A DNA stretch of 64,000 nucleotides from Rebecca billardiae RCC1528 (lineage: Eukaryota > Protista > Haptophyta), in contig OZ251249.1 in assembly GCA_965240325.2 (NCBI GenBank), positions 186,001 through 250,000 of the forward strand, given 5' to 3'. The position numbers and the translations under genes were made by a program. Below, piece by piece: positions 1-29,902 of the stretch (within the stretch, counting starts at the first letter, position 1; the number at the start of each line of letters is the position of its first letter). Under the pieces are notes generated by a model. That model was not told the origin of the DNA and ran no database searches. It was given only the letters and a program-made list of their open reading frames with translations.

Positions 1-774
1 TCGGACTCGGCGGAGGCGAGCATGCACGAGCACGAGCCGTACACCTTGAGCGTCGAGCCCGGCCACAGCGAGCGCACCGCCGCCGTCAGCCGCCGCACGA
101 CCGCGTTGCGCTGCGGCAGCTGCCGGCGGAAGCGCGCATGCACCTGAGAAGAGCAGAGCGGCGGGGAAAAAAGGGGAAAAGGAAAACGACACAAGAAAAG
201 AAAAGAAAAAACTCAAGACTCTGAGCGGCTCGCCCTGGCGCGCGCGAAGCGCGGCGCGGGCACGCGCGCGGGCGGGCGGCGCGGCGCGGGCGCGCGCACC
301 TGGTCGGCATAGGCGCAGAGGCCGGCGTGCAGCGCGTCGTGGATCGAGGCGGTGTAGAACGGGCCGACGCCGCCGCCCACCGCCACGGCCGACGGCGGCG
401 GCGCGCAGTCGCACGCGGCGCCGCAGCCGCCGCAGCATGCCGCGTGAACGGACGCGTGCGGCGGCGCGGCCGACGCGGCGGCGGCGCTGTCGGCGGCGGC
501 GGCGGCGGCGGAAGCGAGCGCGTGGCGGCACGGCGGCACCGGCAGCTGCGCCGTCACGCTCGCCGCCGCCGCCGCCGCCGCCTCGTCGTCGGCGACGTCC
601 GCAGCCGCTGCGCCGGCGCGCGCGAGCGCGCCCGCGGCGTCGGACGCCGGCGGCGCGCGCGGGCGGTCAGCGTCGTCGGCGCCCGTCGACGTGGGCACGC
701 GCGCGGGCGAGAGCCCGGCCTCCGGCATGGCGACACCGCCCGCCGCGCCCGCGCTGCCCGCTCCTGCCTCGTGC

Positions 775-807
<33 letters not shown>

Positions 808-1100
808 AAGACGGGGGCGTACCAGGAGGTGCCGTCGACGCACCACTGCGCGTCGTCGTCGTCGTCGGGCGGGGGCACGGCGTTCGCCCACGGGATCGCG
901 GCGCCGCCCTCCGCGCCCGCGCGGCGCGGCGCGTCGGCGGCGCCGCCGGCGCCGCCGCCGCGCGCCGCGTCGGCGCGCGCGGGCGTCGAGGGCGGCGGGC
1001 GCAGCGCGAGGAGCTGCTCGCGCGTGTACTGGTACACGGGCCCCATCGGGCCCAGCCCGCCCGCGTGCGCGGGCATGCGCTCCGCCACGCCTGATGCCAT
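1..1100 (-). CDS. Non-canonical poly(A) polymerase / terminal nucleotidyltransferase (Trf4/PAPD5/Cid1-like), 5' part; runs off the left edge
   Basis: Exon 1100-300, intron 299-144 (GTGCGC...TCTCAG), exon 143-1. The spliced frame reads ...LHAGLCAYADQ|VHARFRRQLPQRNAVVRRLTAAVRSLWPGSTLKVYGSCSCMLASAESD, which is the Pol-beta-family hGS-x(8)-SD(xD) signature with the preceding helices typical of Trf4. The start could be ATG 1100, 1076 or 1046. Confidence 0.75.
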
Positions 1101-1561
1101 CCGAGCGCGGTGCGCGGTGCCGTGCGGCGCGGCAGCGCGGGCTCGGTCGCCTGATTCAATGCGGGCGGCGGCGCGTGCCTGGGCGGCCGAGCGGAATGAT
1201 GATGACTGCGCCGGCGAACGACTGCCCACTTTCTGAAGGCGAATTAAAATCCGCCTGACGAACGCTCATGAACAGCGCTATCTATCCTGGTCGGAACGAA
1301 CCGATCCACGTGGATCTTGGGATGATCGCTCAGATTTGTAATTGTTCCATCAAATTGGATGCTCGATGACGCGACCGGATTGGGTCGTCAAAAACCCGGC
1401 TCGGAATCATATGCTCGACACGATGGCGGCGGCGCCGCCGGCGCGCGCCCTGTCTGAGGCTCGAGCCGTCGCGCCCGGTCAAGGCCGCCGCCCCCACCCG
1501 ACCTCCCCCCCACCACCGCCCATCCCCACCGTCTTGCCACATCGCACGGCTCGGCGCGCGC

Positions 1562-7605: not shown

Positions 7606-10600
7606 CTACCCCAGGATGGAGTTGGGGTCGTCGATGAAGTCCTCCATCGCCAGCTCCGCCCCGCCGAACGCGTCGCCCACCGCCTCGCCCAGCGCGCCGT
7701 CCGCCGGCGTCGTCCCGGCCGAGGCCACGAAGAGCGGGCCGAGGACGAGGATCACGGTGGAGAGCAGCTTGATCACCACGTGCAGGGAGGGCCCCGCGGT
7801 GTCCTGCGCGCGGCGCGGCCGGGAGCGCGCGCGGCCGCACTCGGCTCGTCAGTGGCGGCGGCGCGCGCGCGCGCGCCCGCGGCGCCGCCTTCCGCCCCGC
7901 GGCGCCGCGCACGCACGGCGCTGGCCGCGCCGCCTGCCGCAGTCCGCACTTTGAACGGGTCGCCGACGGTGTCTCCGGTGACGGCTGCCTTGTGCGCGTC
8001 GGAGCCCTTGCCGCCGTGCGCGCCCGACTCGATCAGCTTCTTCGCGTTGTCCCACGCGCCTGCGGAGGCGCAGGGCGGCGGCGGCGCGCGCCGTCGGCAG
8101 CCGCGCGCGGCGGCGCGGCGCGTCCGCCGCGCGCCGCGCGCCGCGCGCACGCGCCCGCACGCCGCCGCGCGCGCGCGCACCGCCCGCGTTGTCCAGAAAG
8201 AGGGCGAGCAGCAGCCCCGTCAGCGTCGCGAGCATCAGGAAGCTGCCCAGCACCTCCGCCGCGAGCAGCGGCCGGCCGGTGGCGCTGCCAAGCGCTTTGA
8301 AGCCGAGCCCGATGCACAGCGGCGCGGCGACCACCAGGAAGGCCGGCCTGCGCGCGCGCGCCGCAGAGTCCGGACATTTTTGATGGGGAGTCCGGGGCGG
8401 GTGTGAGTCCGGGGCGGGGCGTGCGCGCGGGGAAGGGGCGGGCGTGGGGGCGGCAGGGCGCTGGCACGGGGCGACGACGATGCGCCGCGCCCGCGGCTCG
8501 GCGCGCGCACCGGCGGCGGCGCGCGACGGTCGTGGGCGCGGCGCGCGGTGTCGCAGTGGGCGCGCGGTGTCGCAGTGGGCGCGCGGTGTCGCAGTGGGCG
8601 CGCGCGCACTTGGCCATCTCGCCGAGCGCGGCGCGCGTGACGATGGCGACGCACGCGCCATAGTCGGGCGGCGTGTGGAACTCGAGGATGCCCGGGATCT
8701 CCGCGAACTGCCGCCGCACCTCCGCCACCACCGCCTGCGCAGCGGCGCCGAGTCCGGGAGTCCGGGAGTTGGCGCATGGCGCCAACGCCGCAACCCGCCC
8801 TGAAGTGGCTGGGGGGGGCGCGGGCGGCGCGCCGCGCTGCCGCGCGCGCACCTGCGCCGTGCGCGAGACCGCGGCCATCGCCCACGCGGCGAAGACGAAG
8901 ATGAGCGCGACGCCGAGCAGCCCGCCGACCAGCACCTCCGGCTGCGTCAGGTTGACCGTTTCGAACGGCACGCCCGCGTAGAGCGAGAACTCGTCGACGA
9001 AGGCGCTGGTGGTGACGAATCCCGGTGGGGTGGGCAAGAATGTCCGGGCGTGGATCGTTGGCCGAGAGCGAACCCGTCCACGATGGCGGCCCGCCGCGCG
9101 GGGGCGGCGTGGTGGGGGCACGCAAGGGTCGGCGAGGCGCGCGGGCGGGGCGGAGGAGCGTGCACCGCACGCCACGCACGCATCGCCCACGCTCCCAACG
9201 CCGCCTCGCCCACGCACGCGCACGCCGCGCCCGTGCGCCGTGGCAGGCGCGCGGCGGCGCGCGGCGCGCCCGCGCCCGCGCGGCGCGGCGGCGCGGCGGC
9301 GCGGCGGCGCGGCGGCGCGCACGAGAAGAGGAGAAAGGAGGCGAGCGCGGCGGTGCCGATGGAGTAGCCCTTCGTCGCCGCCTTCGTCACGTTCCCCACC
9401 GCGTCGAGCTGGTCCGTGATCTCCCGGACCGCCGACGGCTGCCCGGACATCTCCACAATCCCGCCCGCGTTGTCTGCGATCGGACCGAAGTTGTTCATCT
9501 GACCAAGCGCGCGCGCGCGCGCGAGATTGGGGCGGAGATCGGGGCGCGCGCGCGGGCGGCGAGGGCGCGCGCGGGGCGGCGTGGGCCACGCGCGCAGGGC
9601 GCGCGACCCGCCCACCCGCACTGCCGGCCGCGCGCCGCACGCCGCGCCCCGCGCCCCGGCGCCGCGCGCGGCCCCAGCCGCGGCCGCGCCGCCGGCCGCG
9701 GCCGCGCGCACGCCCCCCCGGCCGCGGCGCGCGCGCGCGCGCGCACCGCCAGCACGTAGACGGCGGTGCAGAGCATGCCCATCGTCGCGACGGCGGTGCC
9801 GAACAGCCCGGCGTTGCGCGCGGGCAGCCCGCACGACGCCCCGAGCGAGTAGCTGCCGAGCAGCGACGCCGCGATGATCAGCGCAGGCACACCCGTCGAT
9901 TCCAGCCCCACAGCCACGCCCTGCGCCGCGCGGTGGGGAGGTGTGTGTGTGTGTGTGGTGGGGGGGGGGAGGCGTTCGGGGGCGGACAGGGCGGCGCCAG
10001 CGGGAGAGCCGGGGGGCGCGCAGGTGCGGAGGGGCGAGGACGCGCCCAGAGTCGAGCGAGGGGCGGGGTAGGGGTAGGGGTAGGGGTAGGGGTAGGGGTA
10101 GGGGTTAGGGGCACGCACACAGCGACACACGCGCGCGCTGAGCGCAGCGCCCGCGCAGAGGGGGCGGGCGCGGTGCGCACGCGTCGCCTCGCTCCCGCGC
10201 AGCCCTGCCTGGGGCCCTCCGGCGCGTGTGTGCGCGTGTGTGCGGCCCTCCCGCCGTGTGCGCCCTCGCCCTCCCGCCGCGCCCCCCGCACACCTGCGTC
10301 CCTACCCCTACCCCTACCCCGTACTCACCCCTACCCCTACCCCTACCCCTACCCCTACCCCCGCACCTGGATCACGTTGGTCCCGTGCCCGGTCTCAGAC
10401 GCCTTGGCGATCGAGCGCACAGGCGGGTAGTTGTAGTCTGTGTAGTAGCGCGTCACGAGCATGTAGCACAGGGCTGTGACGATGCCGATGAGCCCGCAGC
10501 CGAAGTAGTGGAGCCAGACGCCAGGGAGGCCCTCCACGTCGAGCAGCAGCCGCGTGGCGCAGAGCATCACCAGCGTCGCCAGCGCCATGCACCCGCCATA

Positions 10601-13571
10601 GCTCCGCAGCATGCCTGCACGCGCGCACGGCGCGCGCGCGCCACCGCGCGCGCGCGGGGGGCGGCGCACGTGGGGCGCGTGAGTGAGCGACACACACACG
10701 CACACGCGCGCGCGCGCAGAGAGAGAGAGAGAGACGAGCGCGCGCACACACAGCGAGAGAGGGGCTGCCGCGACCGGGGCCGCAACGCGGCCGGGCGGGT
10801 GCGCGCGCGGGTGGCCGAGGGTGCCGCCCCCCCCACGCGCGCGCGCCCTCCCCGCCCCGCCCCGGCGCGCGCTCCGCCGCGCGCGCGCCGCGCGCACAGT
10901 CGAGAGGGTCGTCGCCGGGCGAGCGCGCGCGCGCGGCGAGCACGCCGCAGGTGGAGATGACCACGTCGGCGGTGTGCATGATCAGCGGGAAGAAGATGAA
11001 CGACGCGCCGCCGTTCTTCAGCCCCGCCTCCTTTGCCAGCGTGCCGCCGAGGATCATCGCGCCGATCACCTCGGCGGCGATCGACTCGAAGACGTCGGCC
11101 ATGCTGCCCGCGCAGTCGCCCACGTTGTCGCCCACCTGGGGGGTAGGGTAGGGTTGGGGTGAGGGTTAGGGGTAGGGTGGTTGGGGTGGGGTGGGTGCGG
11201 GCGGGCGGGCGGGCAACGGTGGTGTCGCGGTGGGCGCTCACAGCGGCGGCGGGGGCGTGCGCGCGCCGCGCGGGTGCTGCGGCGGGCGCGCCGCAGCGGC
11301 AGCATGCGCGCGGTGGGCGGCAGGGCGCGGGCAGCGCATGCCCACCGCCCAGCCCCCACCACACACACACGCACGCACGCCCTGTGCGCACGCCCGCCCC
11401 GCACCAGGTCGGCGATCACCGCCGGGTTGCGAGGGTCGTCCTCAGGGATGCCCGCGTCGATCTTGCCGACCATGTCCGCGCCCACGTCCGCCGCCTTTGT
11501 GTAGATACCGCCGCCCAGCTGCATGAAGAGCGCCACCAGCGACGCGCCGAAGCCTGCGCCGGGGCGGGCGGGGCGGGGAGGGGCGGGCGGGCGGCGTGGT
11601 GGCGGGGTGCGGTGGTGGGCGGGCGCGGCGCAGGTGGCACCACGGCCCAGCGCCTGGGCGCTGCGCTCAGCGGCGGCGGCAGCCAGCGCCACATCCGCAG
11701 CAGCAGCGGCCACACCGCGAGCGGTGGCAGCAGCAGCGATGGCGGCAGCAGTAGCAGCAGTAAGCAGCAGCGGCAGCCATCGCCATCACCGCCACCAGCG
11801 GCAGCGGCAGCAGCAGCGGCAGCCATCGCTATCACCGCCACCAGTGGCAGCGGCAGCGGCAGCGGCAGCCGCCGCAGCAGGTGTGCAGCGCACCGTAGCC
11901 CACAAACAGGAAGGGCACGTCCCCCGGCTGCAGCGAGGAGCCAGGCACCACCAGCGCGTCCGCCAGCACGAAGAGCGTCACGATGCCTGGGCGCAGCGGC
12001 GGCGGGGGGGGCGGCGACGAGGGCGCGCGGTCGAGGGCGGTCAGCGGCGCACACGCCCCCGGGGGGGACGGCGCGTACGCGGCGCGGCCGAAGCGGGCGG
12101 CCGAGCGGCGCCGAGCGCGCGCGCCGCAGCCGTCCCCGGGGGGGGGGGGCGGCTGCGGCTGCGTGCGGCCTCGCACCGAGGATGCAGCCTGCCGCCGAGA
12201 GCACGGCCGAGATCGCGCCGCCCCGGAAGCAGATCTGGGGCGCGCGCCGCACCCGGCGCCGCGCGCCGGTGGGCCGTGAGCGCGCTCGCGCGCGGCGCCA
12301 CCGCTCGCGGCGCGCGCGCGTGCATGCGGCCACAAGCGCGCGCAGCCGCGGCCGCCGCAGCGCGCTCCCGCGGCCGCGCGCGCGCGCGCGCACAGCGCAC
12401 GGCCGCTCGGCGCGCGCGCACCTGCAGCGCCAGCGGCCCGTCCCCCGCGGCGGCGGCCGCCGCGACCCTTCCGTTCACCCGCACACTTACCCACATACCC
12501 ACATAGCCCGCGCCTGCCGAGCACACGGCTCCGATCAGGAAGCTGCCGGCGGTGACGCCGGCGAGCACGGTCCGTGGCAGCTGCAGCGGGCCGGGGTCGC
12601 GGTACGTGTAGAAGACGAACAGGGCGGCGGCCACCACCAGCGCCACCTGCGCATACGCGCACGCACACGCACACGCGCACGCACACACGTACACACACAC
12701 ACGCACGCGCGCGCACACACACACACACACGCGCCACGCACACACACGCACACGCGCCACGCACACAAGCACAAACACACGCACGCGCACACACACACGC
12801 ACACACGCACGCGCGCACACACACACGCACACGCACACGCGCCGCACGCGGCACATGAGGGCGACAGGGAGGGCGCCCGCACCGACGGGCGCCCGTGCCG
12901 GCGGGGGCGCGTGAGCGCACGCCCGTCGCCCCGCGGAAGACCCCCGCCCAAAGCACGCCGCCTTTGCTTTGCGTTGAAATCCGTTTCCCGCCTCGCCCCC
13001 CTCTCCTCCCCCATGGCTCATGGCTGCTGCGCGCGCGTGACGGAAGGAGGCGGCGGCTCGAGCGCGGCGCGCGGATCGGCGCGCGGGCCGGCGCGGCGCG
13101 CACCTGCGCGATGCGCGTGTACTGCACGCGCATGAAGGCGTGCGCGCCCGTGCGGATGGACGCGGCCACGGCCTGCATGTCCGCCGAGCCGCAATCTCGA
13201 GATAGAATCTCGGCGGCGAGATGGTGCGAGTACGCCACCGCGCCAAAGCAGACGACGCCGATGCCGACGACGTAGCCGCCGAGTCCGGAGGCGGAGTACG
13301 CGGAGAGCACGGCGAGGGTGAGCAGGTGGAGCACGCCCAGCGCGCCCCACATCGCGCCGGGCAGCTCGGACCGGCCGCCGCGCCCGCCCGCGCCCTTCTT
13401 GCCGTCGTCCGGCGACGGCAGGCCGCCGTTGCCGCCGCCGCCGCCGAGGCCGCCGCCCTCGGCGGCCTCGAGCGCCTGGCGGCCGGCCGGGTAGCCCGCC
13501 GCGCGGCGCGTCATCCCGTCCGCGCGGTTCATCGCGCTCGCGCTGCTGCTGCCGTACGCCGCGGACGCCAT
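7606..13571 (-). CDS. Membrane-bound H+-translocating pyrophosphatase, K+-independent (AVP2/VHP2 type), multi-exon
   Basis: Exons encode [74 protein letters not shown] (Lys of the K+-independent signature, 9396-9367), [25 protein letters not shown] and [16 protein letters not shown] 13571, TAG 7608-7606. Confidence 0.96.
8541..8597. repeat. Intronic 19-bp tandem repeat x3 (GCGCGCGGTGTCGCAGTGG)
   Basis: Exact units at 8541, 8560 and 8579. Confidence 0.9.
10065..10110. repeat. Telomere-like (GGGGTA)n tract ending in GGGTTAGGG, intronic
   Basis: Read directly; lies in PPase intron 9921-10366. Confidence 0.95.
10300..10360. repeat. Telomere-like (CCCCTA)n tract, inverted relative to 10065-10110, same intron
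   Basis: Read directly; immediately after the donor at 10366. Confidence 0.95.
11139..11195. repeat. Degenerate telomere-like tract (GGGTA/GGGTT/TGAGGG/TTAGGG) next to a splice acceptor
   Basis: The sense (minus) strand reads CCCCTAACCCTCACCCCAACCCTACCCTACCCCCCAG|GTGGGCGACAAC. Confidence 0.85.
12652..12840. repeat. Compound (CA)n/(CG)n microsatellite in the first PPase intron
   Basis: About 190 bp of alternating purine-pyrimidine sequence. Confidence 0.95.
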
Positions 13572-13871
13572 CGTCAGCGCCGCTCACTCTCGCGCGCGGC
13601 GGCCAGCACAAGCGAGACCGATCCGCTCGGCGTCGCGGGCGATGGCGGCGCAGTCCGGTGGCCGCTCGGAAGGGCAGCTCACCGCGAGCGCAGCGGCTCG
13701 CGTTTGCTCGCGCGTCCTACTCGCGGTGAGCGGAGCGCGGCTGGCGGCAGCCCGCGCCGGCGCGCGTGGGCCCTGGCGCGGCGCGGCGCGGTCTCACGCC
13801 CCGCCGCGCGCCCCGCCCGCCCTCCCGTGCGCGGCGCAGCCCCCGAACCTCCGGACCCGCGCCCGCCCACC
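13572..13871. promoter_or_regulatory. Probable bidirectional promoter/5' UTR region between H+-PPase and TMEM43
   Basis: Divergent ATGs only 300 bp apart. Inferred from position alone. Confidence 0.5.
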
Positions 13872-15389
13872 ATGTCTGAGGACGGCGGCGGCGGCGGCGG
13901 CGACTTTGAAGGCGGCGACTTTAGCGAGGTGACGACGGAGAACTTCATGGGGCGGATGGGCAACTCGTGCTGCGGCGTGGGGGTCGGGATCATCCTCTTC
14001 CTCCTCGCCGGCCCGCTCATCTGGTGGAACGAGGGCCGCGCCGTCTTCACGCGCGACGCGATCAACGCCGGCATGGCCAACGTGGTCGAGGCCGACTGCG
14101 CGCGGCTCGACCCGGCGAACGAGGGGAAGCTGATCCACTTCGCGTGCGAGCTCGAGGGCCTCTCCTCCTTCTCCGCCCTCGGCGGCGTCGTCTCCGTCAA
14201 CGAGTCCATCTTCCTCGCCACCGAAGTCTCCATGTACCAGTGGACGGAAACTTCCCGGAAACAGACGAGCAACACGGCCGCGGGCGGCAAGAAGACGAGT
14301 GCGCGCGGCGCGCGCGGGCGCGGGCGGGCGGGCGGGCGGGCGGGCGTGGCGGGCGCGGCGCACTCGCGCGAGGAGCGCGCCATCGCGTGCGCGCCCGCGC
14401 TCACGCGCGCCCTCCACGCGCGCGCCCTCTCCTGCGGCGCTAACCCTAACCCTAACCCCCTAACCCTCACCCTCACCTCGCCGCGCCTCGCCGCGCGCGC
14501 GCCGCGCGCCGCAGCGACGACGTACTCGTACTCGCGCGCGTGGACGGGCTCGCCGATCAACTCGAACGCGTTCAAGCGGCCCACGTCCAACCGCACCAAC
14601 CCGCCCGACTCCGCCTGGCCGCTGCACACCAACACCCAGTGGGCGGCCGAGCTGCGCGCGGGTGTGTACTCACTTCCTACTGACAAGGTGAAGAGCGCGC
14701 TCAGCTCGTCCGAGCCGCTGGAACTCTCCGGAAGTTTCGCGCGCGGCGGGAACGTGAGCTTCTCGGCGGTGCAGCCGCCGGCGGCGATCACGCCGGCCAC
14801 CGTCGCGCTCTTCGACTCGCACACGCTCTCCACCGCCGACCCAGCCAAGCCGACGCCAGTCGGCGCCATGCACATTTCGTTCGAGCGCTCGACGGCCACG
14901 GCCGCGTCGGCGCTCGCCGCGCAGCAGGGCGACGGCATCGCGGAGTGGGGCAGCGGCACGAAGAAGGTGAAGGACGGGTACGAGCTCTTCCGGCTGGTCG
15001 AGGGCGAGCAGTCCGCGCAGGACATGTTCGAGGAGATGCACGCGTCGAACAACGCCATGACGTGGGTGCTGCGACTCGTGTGCCTGCTGTGCGCGTGGGG
15101 AGGGCTCTATCTTGTCGTGGCGCCGCTCGCGACGATGCCGGACTTCATCCCGTTCTGCGGCGAGTTCATCGGGGACATGATCGGGATGGTCCTGGGCTGC
15201 GCGATGGGCTGCATCGCCCTCGTGTACTGCTGCACCATCGGCGCCATCGCGTGGATCCGCTTCAGGCCGCTGCTCGGCGTCGGGCTGCTGCTCGTCGCGG
15301 CCGCGGCCGGCGGCGCGTACTGGTACGCGCGTCAGTACGCGAGCAAGAAGAAGAAGGAGGAGAGCGGCGGCGGCGAGTTGCTCTCGTGA
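13872..15389 (+). CDS. TMEM43: Transmembrane protein 43 (LUMA/DUF1625 family)
   Basis: GIILF..LIWWNEGRAV, NEGKLIH, VSMYQWTE, YSYSRAW..INSNAF, SAQDMFEEMHASNNAMTWVLR, IAWIRFRP. Intron 14299-14514. Confidence 0.93.
   Translation: MSEDGGGGGGDFEGGDFSEVTTENFMGRMGNSCCGVGVGIILFLLAGPLIWWNEGRAVFTRDAINAGMANVVEADCARLDPANEGKLIHFACELEGLSSFSALGGVVSVNESIFLATEVSMYQWTETSRKQTSNTAAGGKKTSARGARGRGRAGGRAGVAGAAHSREERAIACAPALTRALHARALSCGANPNPNPLTLTLTSPRLAARAPRAAATTYSYSRAWTGSPINSNAFKRPTSNRTNPPDSAWPLHTNTQWAAELRAGVYSLPTDKVKSALSSSEPLELSGSFARGGNVSFSAVQPPAAITPATVALFDSHTLSTADPAKPTPVGAMHISFERSTATAASALAAQQGDGIAEWGSGTKKVKDGYELFRLVEGEQSAQDMFEEMHASNNAMTWVLRLVCLLCAWGGLYLVVAPLATMPDFIPFCGEFIGDMIGMVLGCAMGCIALVYCCTIGAIAWIRFRPLLGVGLLLVAAAAGGAYWYARQYASKKKKEESGGGELLS
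14440..14478 (+). repeat. Telomeric (CCCTAA)n/(CCCTCA)n tract near the 3' end of the TMEM43 intron
   Basis: CTAACCCTAACCCTAACCCCCTAACCCTCACCCTCACC. Confidence 0.92.
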
Positions 15390-15587
15390 GGTGCGGCTGC
15401 TCGGGCTGGCGGCGTGGGCGGCGCGGCGCGGCGCGGCGCGGGGCGGCGCGGGGCGCGGCCAGGATTCGAGGCGGGCGCGCGGGCGCGGGCCCCCGCGCAC
15501 GCCCCGGCGCCGCTGGCTGGTGCGCTGCTCGATGACTGCATGCAGCGCTTACGGCTTATAATTAGCTTCGATCTCCCGACGAAGGGC

Positions 15588-25654: not shown

Positions 25655-28600
25655 CTACAGCACGTCCGACGCCCGCGATGTTCGGACGCCGACGCTCGCG
25701 CGGCGGCCGCCGCCGCCGCCCAGCGCCGGCGGCTGCGCCGGCGACTGCGCGGCGGCGGCGGCCGGCGCTGGCGGCGCGGTCGCCGGCGTCGCCTTCTTGT
25801 CCACGCTCAACACCGCGACCGCCCCCGCCGCGCGCCACGTGCGCCGCCCCGCCGCGGGCGAGCTCGCGAGCACGTTGGCCAGCCGCTCGCGCCGGCGCAT
25901 CGCCATCGTCTCGCGTCTCTCGTGCATCTCAATCTGCATACGGCGCATGTCGGAGCGCAGCTTGAGCTCGGCCTGCTGCTTGGACTTGAGCGCGTTGGTC
26001 ACCTGCTGCGTCTTCTGCGCCATCGCGAATCGCTCGCCGATCCCCGGCAGCAGCGCGTAGAGAGAATCGAAATGGAAGGGCGGCAGGTCGAGAAACCTGC
26101 GGGCGGCGGCAGCCGTTCGCAGCGGCGGCGGCAGCAGCAGCGGGCAGCGGGCAGCAGGAGCGCGGCGCGCGCGCGGGGCGGGGCACGGGGCACATGCAGG
26201 CAGGCAGGCAGGAGGGGGCGGCGGCGGCGGCGGGCGGGGCACGGTGCGCGCAGCGGTCAGACGCCGCGCGACGCCCACGGCTCGAGCCGCGCGCGCCCAG
26301 CCCTGCCCGCCCAGCAGCCGCCGCCGCCAGGCCCGTCGCCATGCTCCCCTCCGCAAACGCCGCCGCGCTGTCCGCGCGCCGAGCGCCGCGCGCGCACCAG
26401 CTCGGCTCGGCGCTGACGATGTGCGCCTTGCGCGGGTCGAACTTGAGGCTGCCGTTGCGCAGCCATGAGAGCAGCCCGCCCTCGCCAAAGTGCTTGTACG
26501 GCGAGTGCGTCTGCATCCCGCCGACCACGAGCCGCGTCGGCTTGGGCGGCGGCTCGGTGAGCGTCGCGCCACCGTCGGACATGCGCCGCACCGACTTGCG
26601 GATGCTGCGCCGCTGGCTGCTGCGCCGGCCCATCCGCCCCGCATCGGGCGGCGGCATGATCTCCACCACCGCCTCGACCGAGCCGCACGCCAGCGTGTAC
26701 AGGTTGCCGTCCGTGTTGCCCTGCCGCACGATCGTCACGTTTGCGGGGACGGCGACGAAGCGGAAGAGGCTGGCGATCGCGCGGAGCTTGGCGTCCGGCA
26801 GGTCGCGGAAGACGGAGAGCGAGTTCGGCACGTCGGGGTCGAGCAGCCGCACGTTCGCCGTGATCCGCGCCGCCTCGCGCACCGAGTGCGGCAGCTGCTC
26901 GCTCGGCACGCAGATCACGACGAGCGGCTCGAGGCACGAGGCCGTCTCGGCGCGGCGCCTGTCGGACACCTGCGCGTCCGACGCGGCGCCCTCGACGCCG
27001 ACGTACGCGCGCGAGCGGCCGGGCAGGAGGCCCAGGCCGCGCGGCGCGTGCACGTGCCGCACGGTGTCGTCGTAGCCGACCAGCCGCACCGTGCCCTCGA
27101 CGACGAGGTAGAGCGGCGAGCCGTGCGCGCTCGTGCCCTGGCGGTACAGCGTCGTGTACCGGTCGGCCACCTTGGCGCGCGCGAACGCGCAGATCGAGTC
27201 GAGCTCGTCCTCGGTGCAGCTCTCGAAGAGCGCGCACGCGTGCACGTAGCGCTGCACGTCGACGGCCTCGGCGGCGAGCGCGTGCACCAGCGCGCGGCGC
27301 AGCCGCTTCGAGTGGAACAGCGCGCGCAGCCGGCGCCAGCCCCGCGACAGCTCGTGCGCGCGGTGCGAGGCGCGCTCCGCCGACGAGTGCGAGGAGGAGC
27401 CCGCGGGCGTCTCCCCCTCGTGCTCGCCGAGCGCGCCGAGGGCGGGTTCCGCCCCGCGCAGGGAGGCGAGCCGGGCGCGCGGCGTCTCGCCCCAGCCCTC
27501 TGGCAGCGCGGGCTGCTGCCGCGGCATAATCGCCACTGCGGCGCGGACGTCAGACACGCTGAAACGCGACTCGCGCCCGCGGCTCCTGCCGCGCTGCTGC
27601 CGGCGGGTTGGCGACGGCGAGCCGGCCGGCGTCGCTCCGCCCGCGCCCTCGGCGATGCCGACGACCGAGAGGCGCCCCGGGGGCGAGGGCGAGCGCGAAG
27701 CGCGCACGCTGCGCCGGCGGCTCACTGGCGTCGCCGCGTCTGACGCGCGGTAATCAGAGTCCTCGGCAGCGAGTTGCTCGTCGAGGGTCACCGTCGGGGC
27801 GCCCTCCGGTACGCTCATGCCGGCAAAGAAGGGCCCCGCCGAGCTCGCCGCGGACGCCCTTGACGACGGCGGCAGCGTAGTGCCCAAGCCGCTGGCCCGC
27901 GTCGATGACGCCGCCAGCATCCCGCCCGCGGACGATGCGCGCGCCTGGCCGCAGGCATGCTCCATGCTTGGCGGTTGCTGCACGACCTGCACGGACGGCA
28001 CCTGCATGCCGGCTGATGGCCGCCCGTGGGCGGGCATCGGTGCGAGTGGCATCGCGCCCAACGCCGGTGCGCTGTGCGGCCGGGACACCGCCATCATCAC
28101 CGGCGCCGTGTTGGCCCGCCCCAGGTGGGCGGCGCCCTGCTGCTCGCGCGTACGGTCCACGAGCTCAAATGCGTACGGCACGGTCGACTTGAGCCCTTGG
28201 CGCAGCCCGGCGCGGGTGCTGCCGGGTGCGCCCCACGGCAGGTGAGAGGAAGCCGTCGGGCCGTAGCGCGCGTCCGCGCGCGAGTCCGTCAGGCGGAGGA
28301 TGGGCTCGTGCCGCTCGTGCCGCGCGTGCCGCTGCGCGCCGCGCGCGCTGCCGCTCGGCTGACCGGCCGACAGGCTCTTTGCGGCGGAGGCGTTGGGGAT
28401 GGCGCCCGGGCGAGACGGCTCGCCAAAGGCTTCACGCCCGCGCTTTTCAAAGACCAGCGGCGGCACCGTGATCTGCGCCTGCCCGAGCTGGGTGTCCGTC
28501 GACGTCAGCGGCGGCGCGCCTGCCGTGCTCGGCCGGCCGTCGTGTGCGCGGCTCGTCGTCAGCGCATGCTGCGCGGCTGGCCGGGTCGTGCTGGGCAGGC

Positions 28601-28745
28601 GGGCATCGGGCGAGTCGTAGTTGCGGCGCCGGTCGGCTCGGCGCGCGCCCGCCGTGTACGGCCGCAGCTCTGAGCGCGCCTCGCTCACCGCCGAGCTCAG
28701 CGGTGTCGACGGCGACGCGGCGATCGCTGACAACGTCAACGCCAT
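25655..28745 (-). CDS. Protein with two cyclic-nucleotide-binding (cNMP)-like domains and a long disordered N-terminus
   Basis: LFESCTEDEL..LYRQG..LYLVVEGTV..RRAETASC and VFRDLPDAKL..IVRQGNTDGNLYTLACGSV..FGEGGLL..RKAHIVS. Intron 26397-26097; stop 25655. First ATG is 28745 but the frame is open to 28943. Confidence 0.82.
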
Positions 28746-29902
28746 CGCTTGGCCCACAGCGGCGTGATGATGCACGCCTCCGCTGGCTGCGCTCCTACAG
28801 AAAGCCAAAAGGCTGTCCTGCAGAATCTTCAATCTGCGACGGTCGTACTCATCGTCCAGGCGTCGTGAAGAGTCGTAACAGCTGATTGCCGGTCCGGGCG
28901 CCGGCGCGGGGGCGCTCGCCAGGACACTCCTGACTCCACCCAAAGACTACAGGCAATCGCGGCGGGCAATAAGAAGTCAGAGATCTCACGGTTAGTCTCA
29001 GTTTCTTAGCCGTTCGGTAGCCCGAGCGCCTACGGAGTCTGAGTTCCTTAGCTAGGTCCGCCCGCCGCGCAGGCGCGGGGGGCGCGGCCAGGGGGGCTGA
29101 GGCCGACGAATTTTTTTGGGCCATTTTGGAGCAATAAATCTGCTGGCATGATGTAGTCATGGATGCTGCGGTGCACTGGCCAGGAGTCAGTCATCAGGAG
29201 AAGTCGGGACTTGGCAGCCTGTACTCGTACAGTAGAGTCGGGCCGCGCGCCGCGTGAGCGTCCCACTGGCACTGCGCCTCGGCGGACCACTCGTCAGCCG
29301 CGACGACGTAGTCCCTGTAACTTCTTAGTGTGACTATGCGTATAGCGAACCAGCCAATCGCTAGTCTCAGTGTCTAGGCTAGATCCGCAGATAGGAAGCC
29401 CCAGTGTGTTAACGTGACAGCTCCCTGTTGCCCGCGATTGCAGCCTGTAGTTAGCTCCTGAGGCCCCGGTCCTCCCGCGGCCCAGCGCCCCGGCGAGCGG
29501 GCGCAAGTGGTCAGGCCCGTGCTGCCGACTGCAGGTCATAATGACGATGAGCTCTCTGACTATATATCAGATCGAACACTGATGATGTCATCATTGATGA
29601 TGTCGTCGGCATTGGCCGTTTGCGCATGCTGACGCCTGGCCGGCGCGACAACGGCCGGGCACCGATGTCATCGACACAGCTGTCAGCTGACTGAAGATTA
29701 AGCAGCAGATGACAGCAGTGCCATAACTCATAAGATGCTGAGCGGGCGCCGGCGCGGGTGCCATGCAGGTGCCACACGGGCACAGCGCCTCCGAGTCCGT
29801 CTTGAGTGATCTTGGACTTGGAGTCGTCCCAGATTGGCATGCATCAGCTGTCCGTAAAGTCTGGCATGCCCGTGACGCCCGTGGCTGGTGCCTGTTCATC
29901 AT

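Follow-up and report, generated by a model that had tools for sequence, protein, structure and literature searches.

A predicted TENT-type gene with a candidate eIF4E/4EHP-binding motif at its N-terminus in the haptophyte Rebecca billardiae

The choice of mRNA substrates by tailing enzymes is an open problem, and the recruitment routes known until now run through adaptors: URT1 is brought in via DCP5 and EXA1, TUT3 via 4EIP, and GLD-2 via RNA-binding partners. Arabidopsis URT1 carries an N-terminal disordered region with the motifs M1, M2 and PPGF, and co-purifies with the GIGYF-like EXA1 and the 4EHP orthologue nCBP (PMC7910438). The enzyme is tied functionally to translational repressors, to decapping activators and to nCBP, the last of which it reaches indirectly, its PPGF motif being proposed to bind the GYF-domain protein EXA1. 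In Trypanosoma brucei, the cytosolic terminal uridylyltransferase TUT3 joins the EIF4E1-4EIP complex, a repressive cap-binding complex, and in two-hybrid assays it binds the adaptor 4EIP, not EIF4E1 (PMC8608314); no 4E-binding motif has been reported in TUT3. Direct contact with the cap-binding protein has been described for vertebrate Angel1, a homologue of the CCR4-family deadenylases, which binds eIF4E through a YX4L-phi motif of its own in a Tyr-dependent manner (PMC3763552) and acquired this motif in one lineage. The consensus YXYX4L-phi for 4EHP binding was defined for GIGYF1/2, in which it is N-terminal and forms a helix, and the canonical motif alone was found to be required in vivo yet not to suffice (PMC5538437). 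GIGYF adds to it a non-canonical motif located 12 residues downstream and auxiliary motifs, with nanomolar affinity and 4EHP selectivity.

Herein, the 5' part of a gene from the haptophyte Rebecca billardiae RCC1528 is compared with these systems; it lies at one end of the window, that is, the whole stretch of 64,000 nucleotides that was analysed. The gene is encoded on the minus strand, begins with an ATG at 1100-1098 and is truncated by the window edge at position 1. Its exon 1 (300-1100) encodes 267 amino acids and is followed by a predicted phase 0 GT-AG intron of 156 nt (144-299) and by a partial exon 2 (1-143; 47 codons plus 2 nt), which continues past the window. The interval between the ATG and the stop of an upstream same-strand gene at about 1562 (1101-1561, minus strand) was assigned to intergenic, promoter and 5' UTR sequence, its GC content falling to 0.52-0.66, and no relevant domains were found in the neighbouring open reading frames. 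Since all six frames are open in this genome of 75% GC, open reading frames alone mean little. The GC content at the third position of the codons (GC3) amounts to 0.95 over 1100-300, each 90-nt block lying at 0.90-1.00 (0.93 in the block holding most of the N-terminal motif discussed below, and 1.00 in the next, which holds the last three residues of the motif), and to 0.98 over 143-3, versus 0.67 in 299-144 and 0.72 in 1229-1101; within the intron, the GC content by codon position is 0.63, 0.69 and 0.67, without coding periodicity. This pattern implies that coding begins near 1100, is interrupted at 299-144 and is back at 143.

The unspliced frame from the ATG at 1100 meets its first stop inside the intron, as a TGA at 215-213. 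The intron signals comprise the donor CAG/GTGCGC, a pyrimidine tract of about 60 nt and the acceptor TTCTCAG/G. When all stop-free GT..AG combinations were enumerated, every pair reaching the G-S (nucleotidyltransferase) frame was found to retain the N-terminal motif, two further pairs took an acceptor at 211 and led into a different frame, and 299-144 was the sole pair to combine a CAG/GT donor with an acceptor immediately after the pyrimidine tract. The three possible start codons, M1, M9 and M19, are all located upstream of the motif. The splice at 299-144 and the continuous frame from the ATG into the nucleotidyltransferase exon, both of which had been proposed in a preliminary description of this DNA, are supported by GC3 periodicity, canonical splice sites and frame logic.

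The 47 residues of exon 2 served as the domain query. They matched the Pfam profile PF22600 (MTPAP-like_central) over its positions 18-57 with E=0.0024 and 18.4 bits, a score under the 27-bit cut-off because just 40 of the 139 profile positions fall in the window, and they matched PF19088 (TUTase) with E=0.037; the ESM Atlas features pointed to PF22600/NTP_transf_2 (PF01909) clusters at 0.95. The best solved-structure match was yeast Trf4/Pap2, the TRAMP poly(A) polymerase (3nyb_A, E=0.065), whose alignment of ..LWPgstLkVYGS.. to ..LWPdadLhVFGS.. reveals a shared LWPxxxLxV[FY]GS and, extending over 36 residues, cannot separate Trf4-like from Cid1/URT1-like enzymes. The Gly-Ser of the hG[GS] signature (33-38, minus strand) is aligned to the VFGS of Trf4. 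The complete signature sought was hG[GS]-x9-13-D-h-[DE]-h, and the start of the palm reads ..LWPGSTLKVYGSCSCMLASAES[D/E]: V-Y-G-S (G36-S37) is succeeded by ten residues and then by the incomplete codon GA (Asp or Glu, window positions 2-1), which corresponds to the first carboxylate, the second lying beyond the window edge. The PAP-associated domain (PF03828) and the nucleotide-selectivity residues would fall to the left of window position 1. After splicing, the nucleotidyltransferase signature noted earlier reads G-S-x10-[D/E] as far as the window edge, and three weak, concordant matches support, as far as 47 residues allow, the assignment of exon 2 to the beginning of the palm of a Trf4/Cid1/URT1-type terminal nucleotidyltransferase (TENT) of the Pol-beta superfamily, while orthology to URT1 is beyond the reach of so short a catalytic segment. 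Extending the query across the splice by the last 24 residues of exon 1 raised neither the Pfam nor the PDB scores, so that homology does not confirm the junction of the two exons. Trf4 is a nuclear enzyme that works with Air2 and Mtr4, and its disordered N-terminus serves partner binding; if the present protein were a TRAMP-type nuclear polymerase, a tether to a cap factor would be less natural.

Exon 1 is laid out as a motif island, a linker of about 240 residues rich in Ala, Gly, Pro and Asp, and the initial helix before the catalytic domain (GPFYTASIHDALHAGLCAYADQ). The island, YQYTREQLLALR (residues 23-34; 999-1034, minus strand), contains YTREQLL at 1028-1008 and is followed by PPP. It accommodates the canonical YX4L-phi motif as Y25-TREQ-L30-L31 and, in addition, the extended GIGYF-type 4EHP motif YXYX4L-phi as Y23-Q-Y25-TREQ-L30-L31, for which it is the single occurrence in the six frames of the 64 kb window. 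The position of YTREQLL within the translated N-terminus agrees with the preliminary description, and the match to the eIF4E-binding YxxxxL-phi consensus, at the consensus level, is stronger than was claimed there. YQYTREQLLAL is locally similar to YRYGREEMLAL of GIGYF2. The Arg at +2 is also present in YDRKFLM of 4E-BP1 and YDREFLL of eIF4G1 (PMC12102759).

In the AlphaFold model of exon 1, a single-sequence prediction and hence weak evidence, 210 of the 267 residues have a pLDDT below 50, whereas residues 21-30 and 31-40 reach 73 and 62, respectively, with a helix at 27-31. No other part of exon 1 has a pLDDT near 70, the motif island being the sole confident segment of an otherwise disordered linker; a local helix in such surroundings would be typical of a motif that folds on binding. 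Both the composition of the linker and this model agree with the long disordered stretch that had been noted after the motif. No hydrophobic non-canonical motif was found 12-30 residues past the helix, residues 43-61 consisting solely of Ala, Gly, Arg, Asp and Pro, and the first hydrophobic cluster beyond the motif is I69-P70-W71, 38 residues after L31. This cluster opens a second island free of low complexity, the Trp/aromatic-rich IPWANAVPPPDDDDDAQWCVDGTSWYAPVF (residues 69-98; 809-896, minus strand), with a pLDDT below 50, which may represent a further short motif or, at 38 residues beyond the canonical helix, a remote contact for the lateral surface. A mitochondrial or plastid targeting peptide was rejected on the sequence alone, in which a hydrophobic signal is missing and acidic residues are present.

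Taken together, the gene may encode a non-canonical TENT (a Trf4/Cid1/URT1-type poly(A)/poly(U) polymerase) whose N-terminal island docks directly on eIF4E/4EHP, to which we assign a probability of roughly 0.37. The further proposal that one polypeptide couples cap recognition to 3' tailing via a 4EHP-like eIF4E paralogue, with no GIGYF/EXA1 or 4EIP adaptor, is put forward a shade more tentatively. In such a mechanism, the island would pack as a short helix against the dorsal surface of a member of the eIF4E family, the likeliest partner being, to judge from the YxY form, a class-II/4EHP-like paralogue. The flexible arm of about 240 residues would then give the catalytic domain access to the 3' end of the very mRNA bound by its cap, which would probably be repressed or deadenylated and to which the enzyme would add A or U, whereby cap status would be coupled to tail remodelling and decay. 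Direct docking is favoured by analogy with URT1, in which the partner motif is likewise placed ahead of a long disordered region, and it is disfavoured by the island standing without a non-canonical partner motif at the usual distance.

The comparison with the known systems brings out both likenesses and differences. As in URT1, a domain of the Cid1/TENT type, here a predicted one, follows a long, highly variable disordered arm, and a helical motif resides in the first 40 or so residues, that of URT1 binding a partner and that of the present protein being predicted. The N-terminal YXYX4L-phi motif recalls GIGYF1/2, its helix here being taken from the AlphaFold model; GIGYF, which contains a GYF domain, serves as a scaffold and is no enzyme, whereas the present protein is a predicted TENT in which neither the non-canonical nor the auxiliary motifs of GIGYF are recognisable. 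A cap link comparable to that of TUT3 is proposed for the R. billardiae protein, and like Angel1 it would belong to a family that processes RNA ends and carry a candidate eIF4E motif of the direct type. The literature search found no published TENT with a 4E-binding motif of its own, which is in keeping with the earlier statement that such an architecture is not known from Trf4/Cid1 enzymes; this statement needs qualification in that indirect links between TUTases and the cap have been published (URT1-EXA1-nCBP and TUT3-4EIP-EIF4E1), as has a direct motif in Angel1. What was originally observed at this locus is real, and its interpretation is partly supported, namely for the enzyme, as far as 47 residues allow, and for the placement of the motif.

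The strongest alternative, which we consider somewhat unlikely, is that the gene encodes a standard TENT whose N-terminal arm is of low complexity and evolves fast, and in which YQYTREQLL is coincidental and without binding function. The canonical motif is too degenerate for prediction, and eIF4E binding was obtained for six of the 14 refined and conserved candidate motifs (PMC3763552). From per-residue rates multiplied by an assumed proteome size, several chance occurrences of YXYX4L-phi and of the order of a thousand of YX4L-phi are expected per proteome, and because the locus was picked for its motif in the first place, a look-elsewhere effect applies. Within the arm itself, the expectation is far smaller: at about 1-3e-4 per residue, the canonical motif would occur by chance about 0.03-0.07 times in the 240-residue linker, and at about 1e-6 per residue, the extended motif just about 2e-4 times, in a genome poor in Tyr (0.9%). 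The fit moreover exceeds the minimal consensus, comprising YxY, Arg at +2, LAL and prolines after the helix, and it falls in the sole confidently modelled helical island of the 240-residue disordered arm, in the first 35 residues of an enzyme of RNA metabolism, much as the partner motif of URT1 does. The missing non-canonical motif at the usual distance speaks again for coincidence.

Relatives that could show constraint on the motif, the lack of which also favours a chance match, did not emerge from any of the searches. A word search with exon 1 gave no match, its results being swamped by low-complexity words, and one with the N-terminal 47 residues gave 40 candidates, none of them at E<=10; since a match of 12 residues cannot reach E<=10, the latter search does not exclude conservation of the motif alone. 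A phmmer comparison of exon 1, run exhaustively over 1.84e9 representatives, returned no matches, neither exon 1 nor exon 2 extended by intron read-through had a relative in the metagenome scans, exact look-up of six open reading frame products from 1-1100 (three true-frame starts and three from other frames) found none on record, and the motif peptide of 32 residues matched nothing in the PDB at E<=10. The nearest relatives of a control gene were 24-26% identical, and the absence of relatives of exon 1 therefore says little.

Less probable, and in our view unlikely, is a functional helical leucine-rich motif directed at another partner, most likely the LSm domain of a decapping activator of the LSM14/DCP5/Scd6 or Edc3 type (or Pat1); in that case the enzyme would be brought, with the same low likelihood, to decapping and repressor complexes instead of the cap-binding protein. 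The URT1-like overall architecture and the predicted helix at 27-31 are compatible with this proposal, as is the palm YGSC, which we take to recall the sequence of URT1. The M1 motif of URT1, within residues 1-40, resembles such leucine-rich motifs and binds the LSm domain of DCP5 directly (PMC7910438), and EQLLAL resembles the LLx-phi-L core (PMC8984151). The core is nevertheless incomplete, L30-L31-A32-L33-R34 having Arg in the place of the final Leu, and the two leucines mutated in URT1 are spaced i and i+4 (PMC7910438). Furthermore, a leucine-rich motif leaves the tyrosines at -5 and -7 unexplained in so Tyr-poor a genome, and neither PPGF nor PPG[F/hydrophobic] occurs anywhere in the 267 residues of exon 1. 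In contrast with URT1, which binds DCP5 via its LLx-phi-L-like M1, the island thus presents a full YXYX4L-phi with neither a PPGF motif nor a complete LLx-phi-L core.

The gene model could also be an artefact, in that exon 1 and the nucleotidyltransferase exon belong to separate genes or are spliced in another way, or in that the 47-residue match is no real TENT domain. Such a reading draws on domain matches that are all under curated thresholds, on the lack of any Pfam or PDB gain from the last 24 residues of exon 1 and on the six open frames of a GC-rich genome, and is very improbable in the face of GC3 periodicity that marks the exact frame before and after the intron and vanishes within it, a phase 0 intron with canonical splice sites at either end and a pyrimidine tract, an interval of 156 nt with neither a stop nor a start signal for a separate gene, and three independent methods that agree on the family at the expected profile positions.

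If the YXYX4L-phi island proves to be coincidental, the locus would represent a non-canonical poly(A)/poly(U) polymerase gene of the ordinary kind, its arm being of low complexity. If direct docking on eIF4E/4EHP is true, the URT1-EXA1-nCBP and TUT3-4EIP-EIF4E1 networks would be condensed here into a single polypeptide, and, as in Angel1, a short motif would have rewired an RNA enzyme in a single lineage. Equipped with an eIF4E/4EHP-binding peptide of its own, a TENT would then constitute a minimal device for coupling cap to tail, and would offer a direct route to testing whether mRNAs are marked for uridylation or adenylation by repressive cap-binding complexes.

The gene lies on the minus strand, in a frame which opens at ATG 1100-1098 and reaches a TGA at 215-213. 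Since all six frames are open at the 75% G+C of the window, ORF length is a poor guide, and the coding extent was judged by the GC content of each codon position in the frame of ATG 1100, also in 90-nt blocks. Third-position GC (GC3) was 0.95 over 1100-300 (0.90-1.00 among the blocks) and 0.98 over 143-3; the codon positions of 299-144 (0.63/0.69/0.67) and the upstream stretch 1229-1101 (GC3 0.72) were without periodicity. This profile indicated that translation starts at or just after 1100 and that an intron lies at about 299-144. The same intron had been predicted in the preliminary description, and it is backed here by the GC3 gap, the splice consensus and the enumeration of all GT..AG pairs with a stop-free product. 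The predicted intron is 156 nt long and of phase 0, with the donor CAG/GTGCGC, the acceptor TTCTCAG/G and a pyrimidine tract of ~60 nt. Two other stop-free pairs use an acceptor at 211 in a different frame, and 299/144 is the sole enumerated pair whose donor fits the consensus and whose acceptor comes right after the pyrimidine tract. This one intron examined displays a G+C dip and a pyrimidine-rich tract. Across the window, genes have GC3 of ~0.95-1.0, stop codons are rare and the six frames hold 47 ORFs of 350 aa or more; it is codon-position GC, not ORF length, that tells genes from noise.

Exon 2 comprises only 47 codons within the window, about a third of a palm domain, and was searched alone. 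Pfam PF22600, the MTPAP-like central palm whose profile covers Trf4/Cid1/TUTase palms, matched at E=0.0024 (profile positions 18-57), and the TUTase profile PF19088 at E=0.037. The best single solved structure was that of yeast Trf4/Pap2 (3nyb_A, E=0.065), with ..AVRSLWPGSTLKVYGS.. of exon 2 placed on ..AVKQLWPDADLHVFGS.., while ESM Atlas assigned exon 2 to clusters with PF22600/PF01909 (feature score 0.95). All these matches fall short of curated thresholds, as can be expected when a third of a domain is searched; the three methods are independent, and they are concordant in family and position. At the window edge, ten further residues separate G36-S37 from a truncated codon, GA, for Asp or Glu, and this G-S-x10-[D/E] end appears compatible with the signature hG[GS]-x9-13-D. 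The second carboxylate, the remainder of the palm, the PAP-associated domain and the residues that select ATP or UTP would all lie beyond the window edge. The nucleotidyltransferase proposed earlier is thus upheld as far as the G-S pair, the cut codon and three sub-threshold matches carry it, and the gene very probably encodes a terminal nucleotidyltransferase (TENT), which may be either Trf4-like (nuclear) or Cid1/URT1-like (cytoplasmic). Scores were no higher when the query also took in the final 24 residues of exon 1 across the splice, so homology alone gives no confirmation of the junction.

Residues 23-34 of exon 1, YQYTREQLLALR (window 1034-999), satisfy both the YX4L-phi consensus and the longer YXYX4L-phi, the canonical 4EHP-binding motif of GIGYF1/2 (PMC5538437). 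YTREQLL was found at 1028-1008, where it had been placed before. The candidate start codons M1, M9 and M19 all precede the motif, which is therefore translated from any of them, and the possibility that it falls outside the translated region was discounted for all three. All stop-free GT..AG pairs leading into the G-S frame of exon 2 retain the motif, and GC3 is 0.93 in the first 90-nt block, which holds most of it, and 1.00 in the next, with its last three residues. Arg at +2 is shared with 4E-BP1 (YDRKFLM) and eIF4G1 (YDREFLL; sequences per PMC12102759), and three prolines follow directly. Single-sequence AlphaFold modelling of exon 1 gave pLDDT below 50 in 210 of 267 residues, in agreement with the long disordered linker previously described; residues 21-40 alone stand out, their two blocks averaging 73 and 62 and including a helix at 27-31. 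Such a lone ordered island in an arm predicted to be disordered is typical of a short linear motif that folds on binding, whichever the partner. Just before the catalytic domain, the otherwise Ala/Gly-rich linker contains a Cys-rich patch, HAACCGGCGAACDC (minus strand 380-440, exon 1 residues ~221-240), apparent from the sequence, which is possibly a small element for metal binding or redox chemistry, or else a mere composition effect.

Direct docking of the TENT on eIF4E or 4EHP through this motif ranks as the single most likely reading, with a probability of roughly 0.37, and is far from established. Against it, the interval 12-30 residues behind the helix lacks a hydrophobic non-canonical motif: residues 43-61 are made up of A, G, R, D and P only, and the first hydrophobic cluster, IPW, is 38 residues off in a Trp-rich island (residues 69-98). 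The base rate is also modest, since in the screen around Angel1, a CCR4-family homologue that belongs to an RNA-end enzyme family and carries an eIF4E motif itself, eIF4E was bound by 6 of 14 candidate motifs, all refined and conserved (PMC3763552). A coincidental match is rated only a little lower. Tyr makes up 0.9% of residues in the GC3-rich frames of the window, YX4L-phi occurs at ~1-3e-4 per residue and YXYX4L-phi is expected at ~1e-6; the latter was encountered once in six frames of 64 kb, at residues 23-34. In the 240-residue arm, ~0.03-0.07 canonical and ~2e-4 extended chance matches are expected, whereas at the same rates a whole proteome of assumed size would hold of the order of a thousand canonical and several extended ones, and the look-elsewhere effect is real because the locus was selected for its motif. 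Less probable still is a helical leucine-rich motif that engages a different partner. The plant TUTase URT1 shares the general design, its TENT catalytic domain being preceded by a long disordered arm that bears partner motifs. Within its first 40 residues URT1 keeps the motif M1, a direct ligand of the DCP5/LSM14 LSm domain (PMC7910438), and EQLLAL resembles the class of M1; however, the core LLx-phi-L (PMC8984151) differs from the LLALR present here, and two rare tyrosines are left without explanation. An artefactual gene model is very improbable, since GC3 periodicity, splice signals and three domain matches agree in one model.

Relatives were sought by several routes. The exon 1 word search was overwhelmed by low-complexity words and retrieved none; that with the N-terminal 47 residues gave 40 candidates, none at E<=10, a score which a 12-residue match cannot attain. 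Exhaustive phmmer of exon 1 against 1.84e9 representatives gave 0 hits, two metagenome scans found no relative, and none of six ORF products from 1-1100 was on record as an exact match. As a control, the domain-bearing TMEM43-family gene at 13221-15389 on the plus strand (PF07787, E=4e-38) matched itself at 100% identity in a 2634-nt Logan contig of run ERR14847148. That contig is 99.96% identical to window 12813-15446, and the organism is therefore present in at least one public run. Among the candidates scored by the word search, its next-best matches were 24-26% identical, which suggests that the nearest sampled relatives are very distant and the lineage poorly sampled. Over such distance a disordered arm would be undetectable, and the missing relatives are therefore uninformative about the motif.

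Elsewhere on the minus strand, the upstream neighbour (1562-2758) ends about 460 nt ahead of the TENT start codon and had no Pfam match; a single hydrophobic helix (LGAWLAANWLLLAILGAIVVAFGLCAW) in its C-terminal part precedes a basic/acidic tail. An H+-translocating pyrophosphatase segment is clear in the ORF at 8036-9640 (PF03030, E=4e-21, best stretch at profile positions 497-545), which is probably a single exon of an H+-PPase gene that has several, and a 1004-aa ORF at 25932-28943 has a sub-threshold cyclic-nucleotide-binding match (PF00027, E=9e-5).

If docking on eIF4E or 4EHP holds, the N-terminal helix would dock on the dorsal surface of a protein of the eIF4E family, and the YxY form of the motif would favour a 4EHP-like paralogue. 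The 240-residue flexible arm would bring the 3' end of the same mRNP within range of the catalytic domain for the addition of A or U, and cap-bound repression would thereby be linked to tail remodelling or decay. Links of TUTases to repressive cap-binding complexes are already known, through adaptors: URT1 co-purifies with nCBP, the 4EHP orthologue, and with EXA1, a GIGYF-like protein, its PPGF probably binding the GYF domain (PMC7910438), and the partner of T. brucei TUT3 is 4EIP, not EIF4E1 (PMC8608314). The architecture had been called unfamiliar, which applies to the motif, a limited literature search having found no report of a TENT with its own 4E-binding motif, but not to the arm, known in its general design from URT1. 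Should the motif work, the adaptor step would be collapsed into the enzyme itself.
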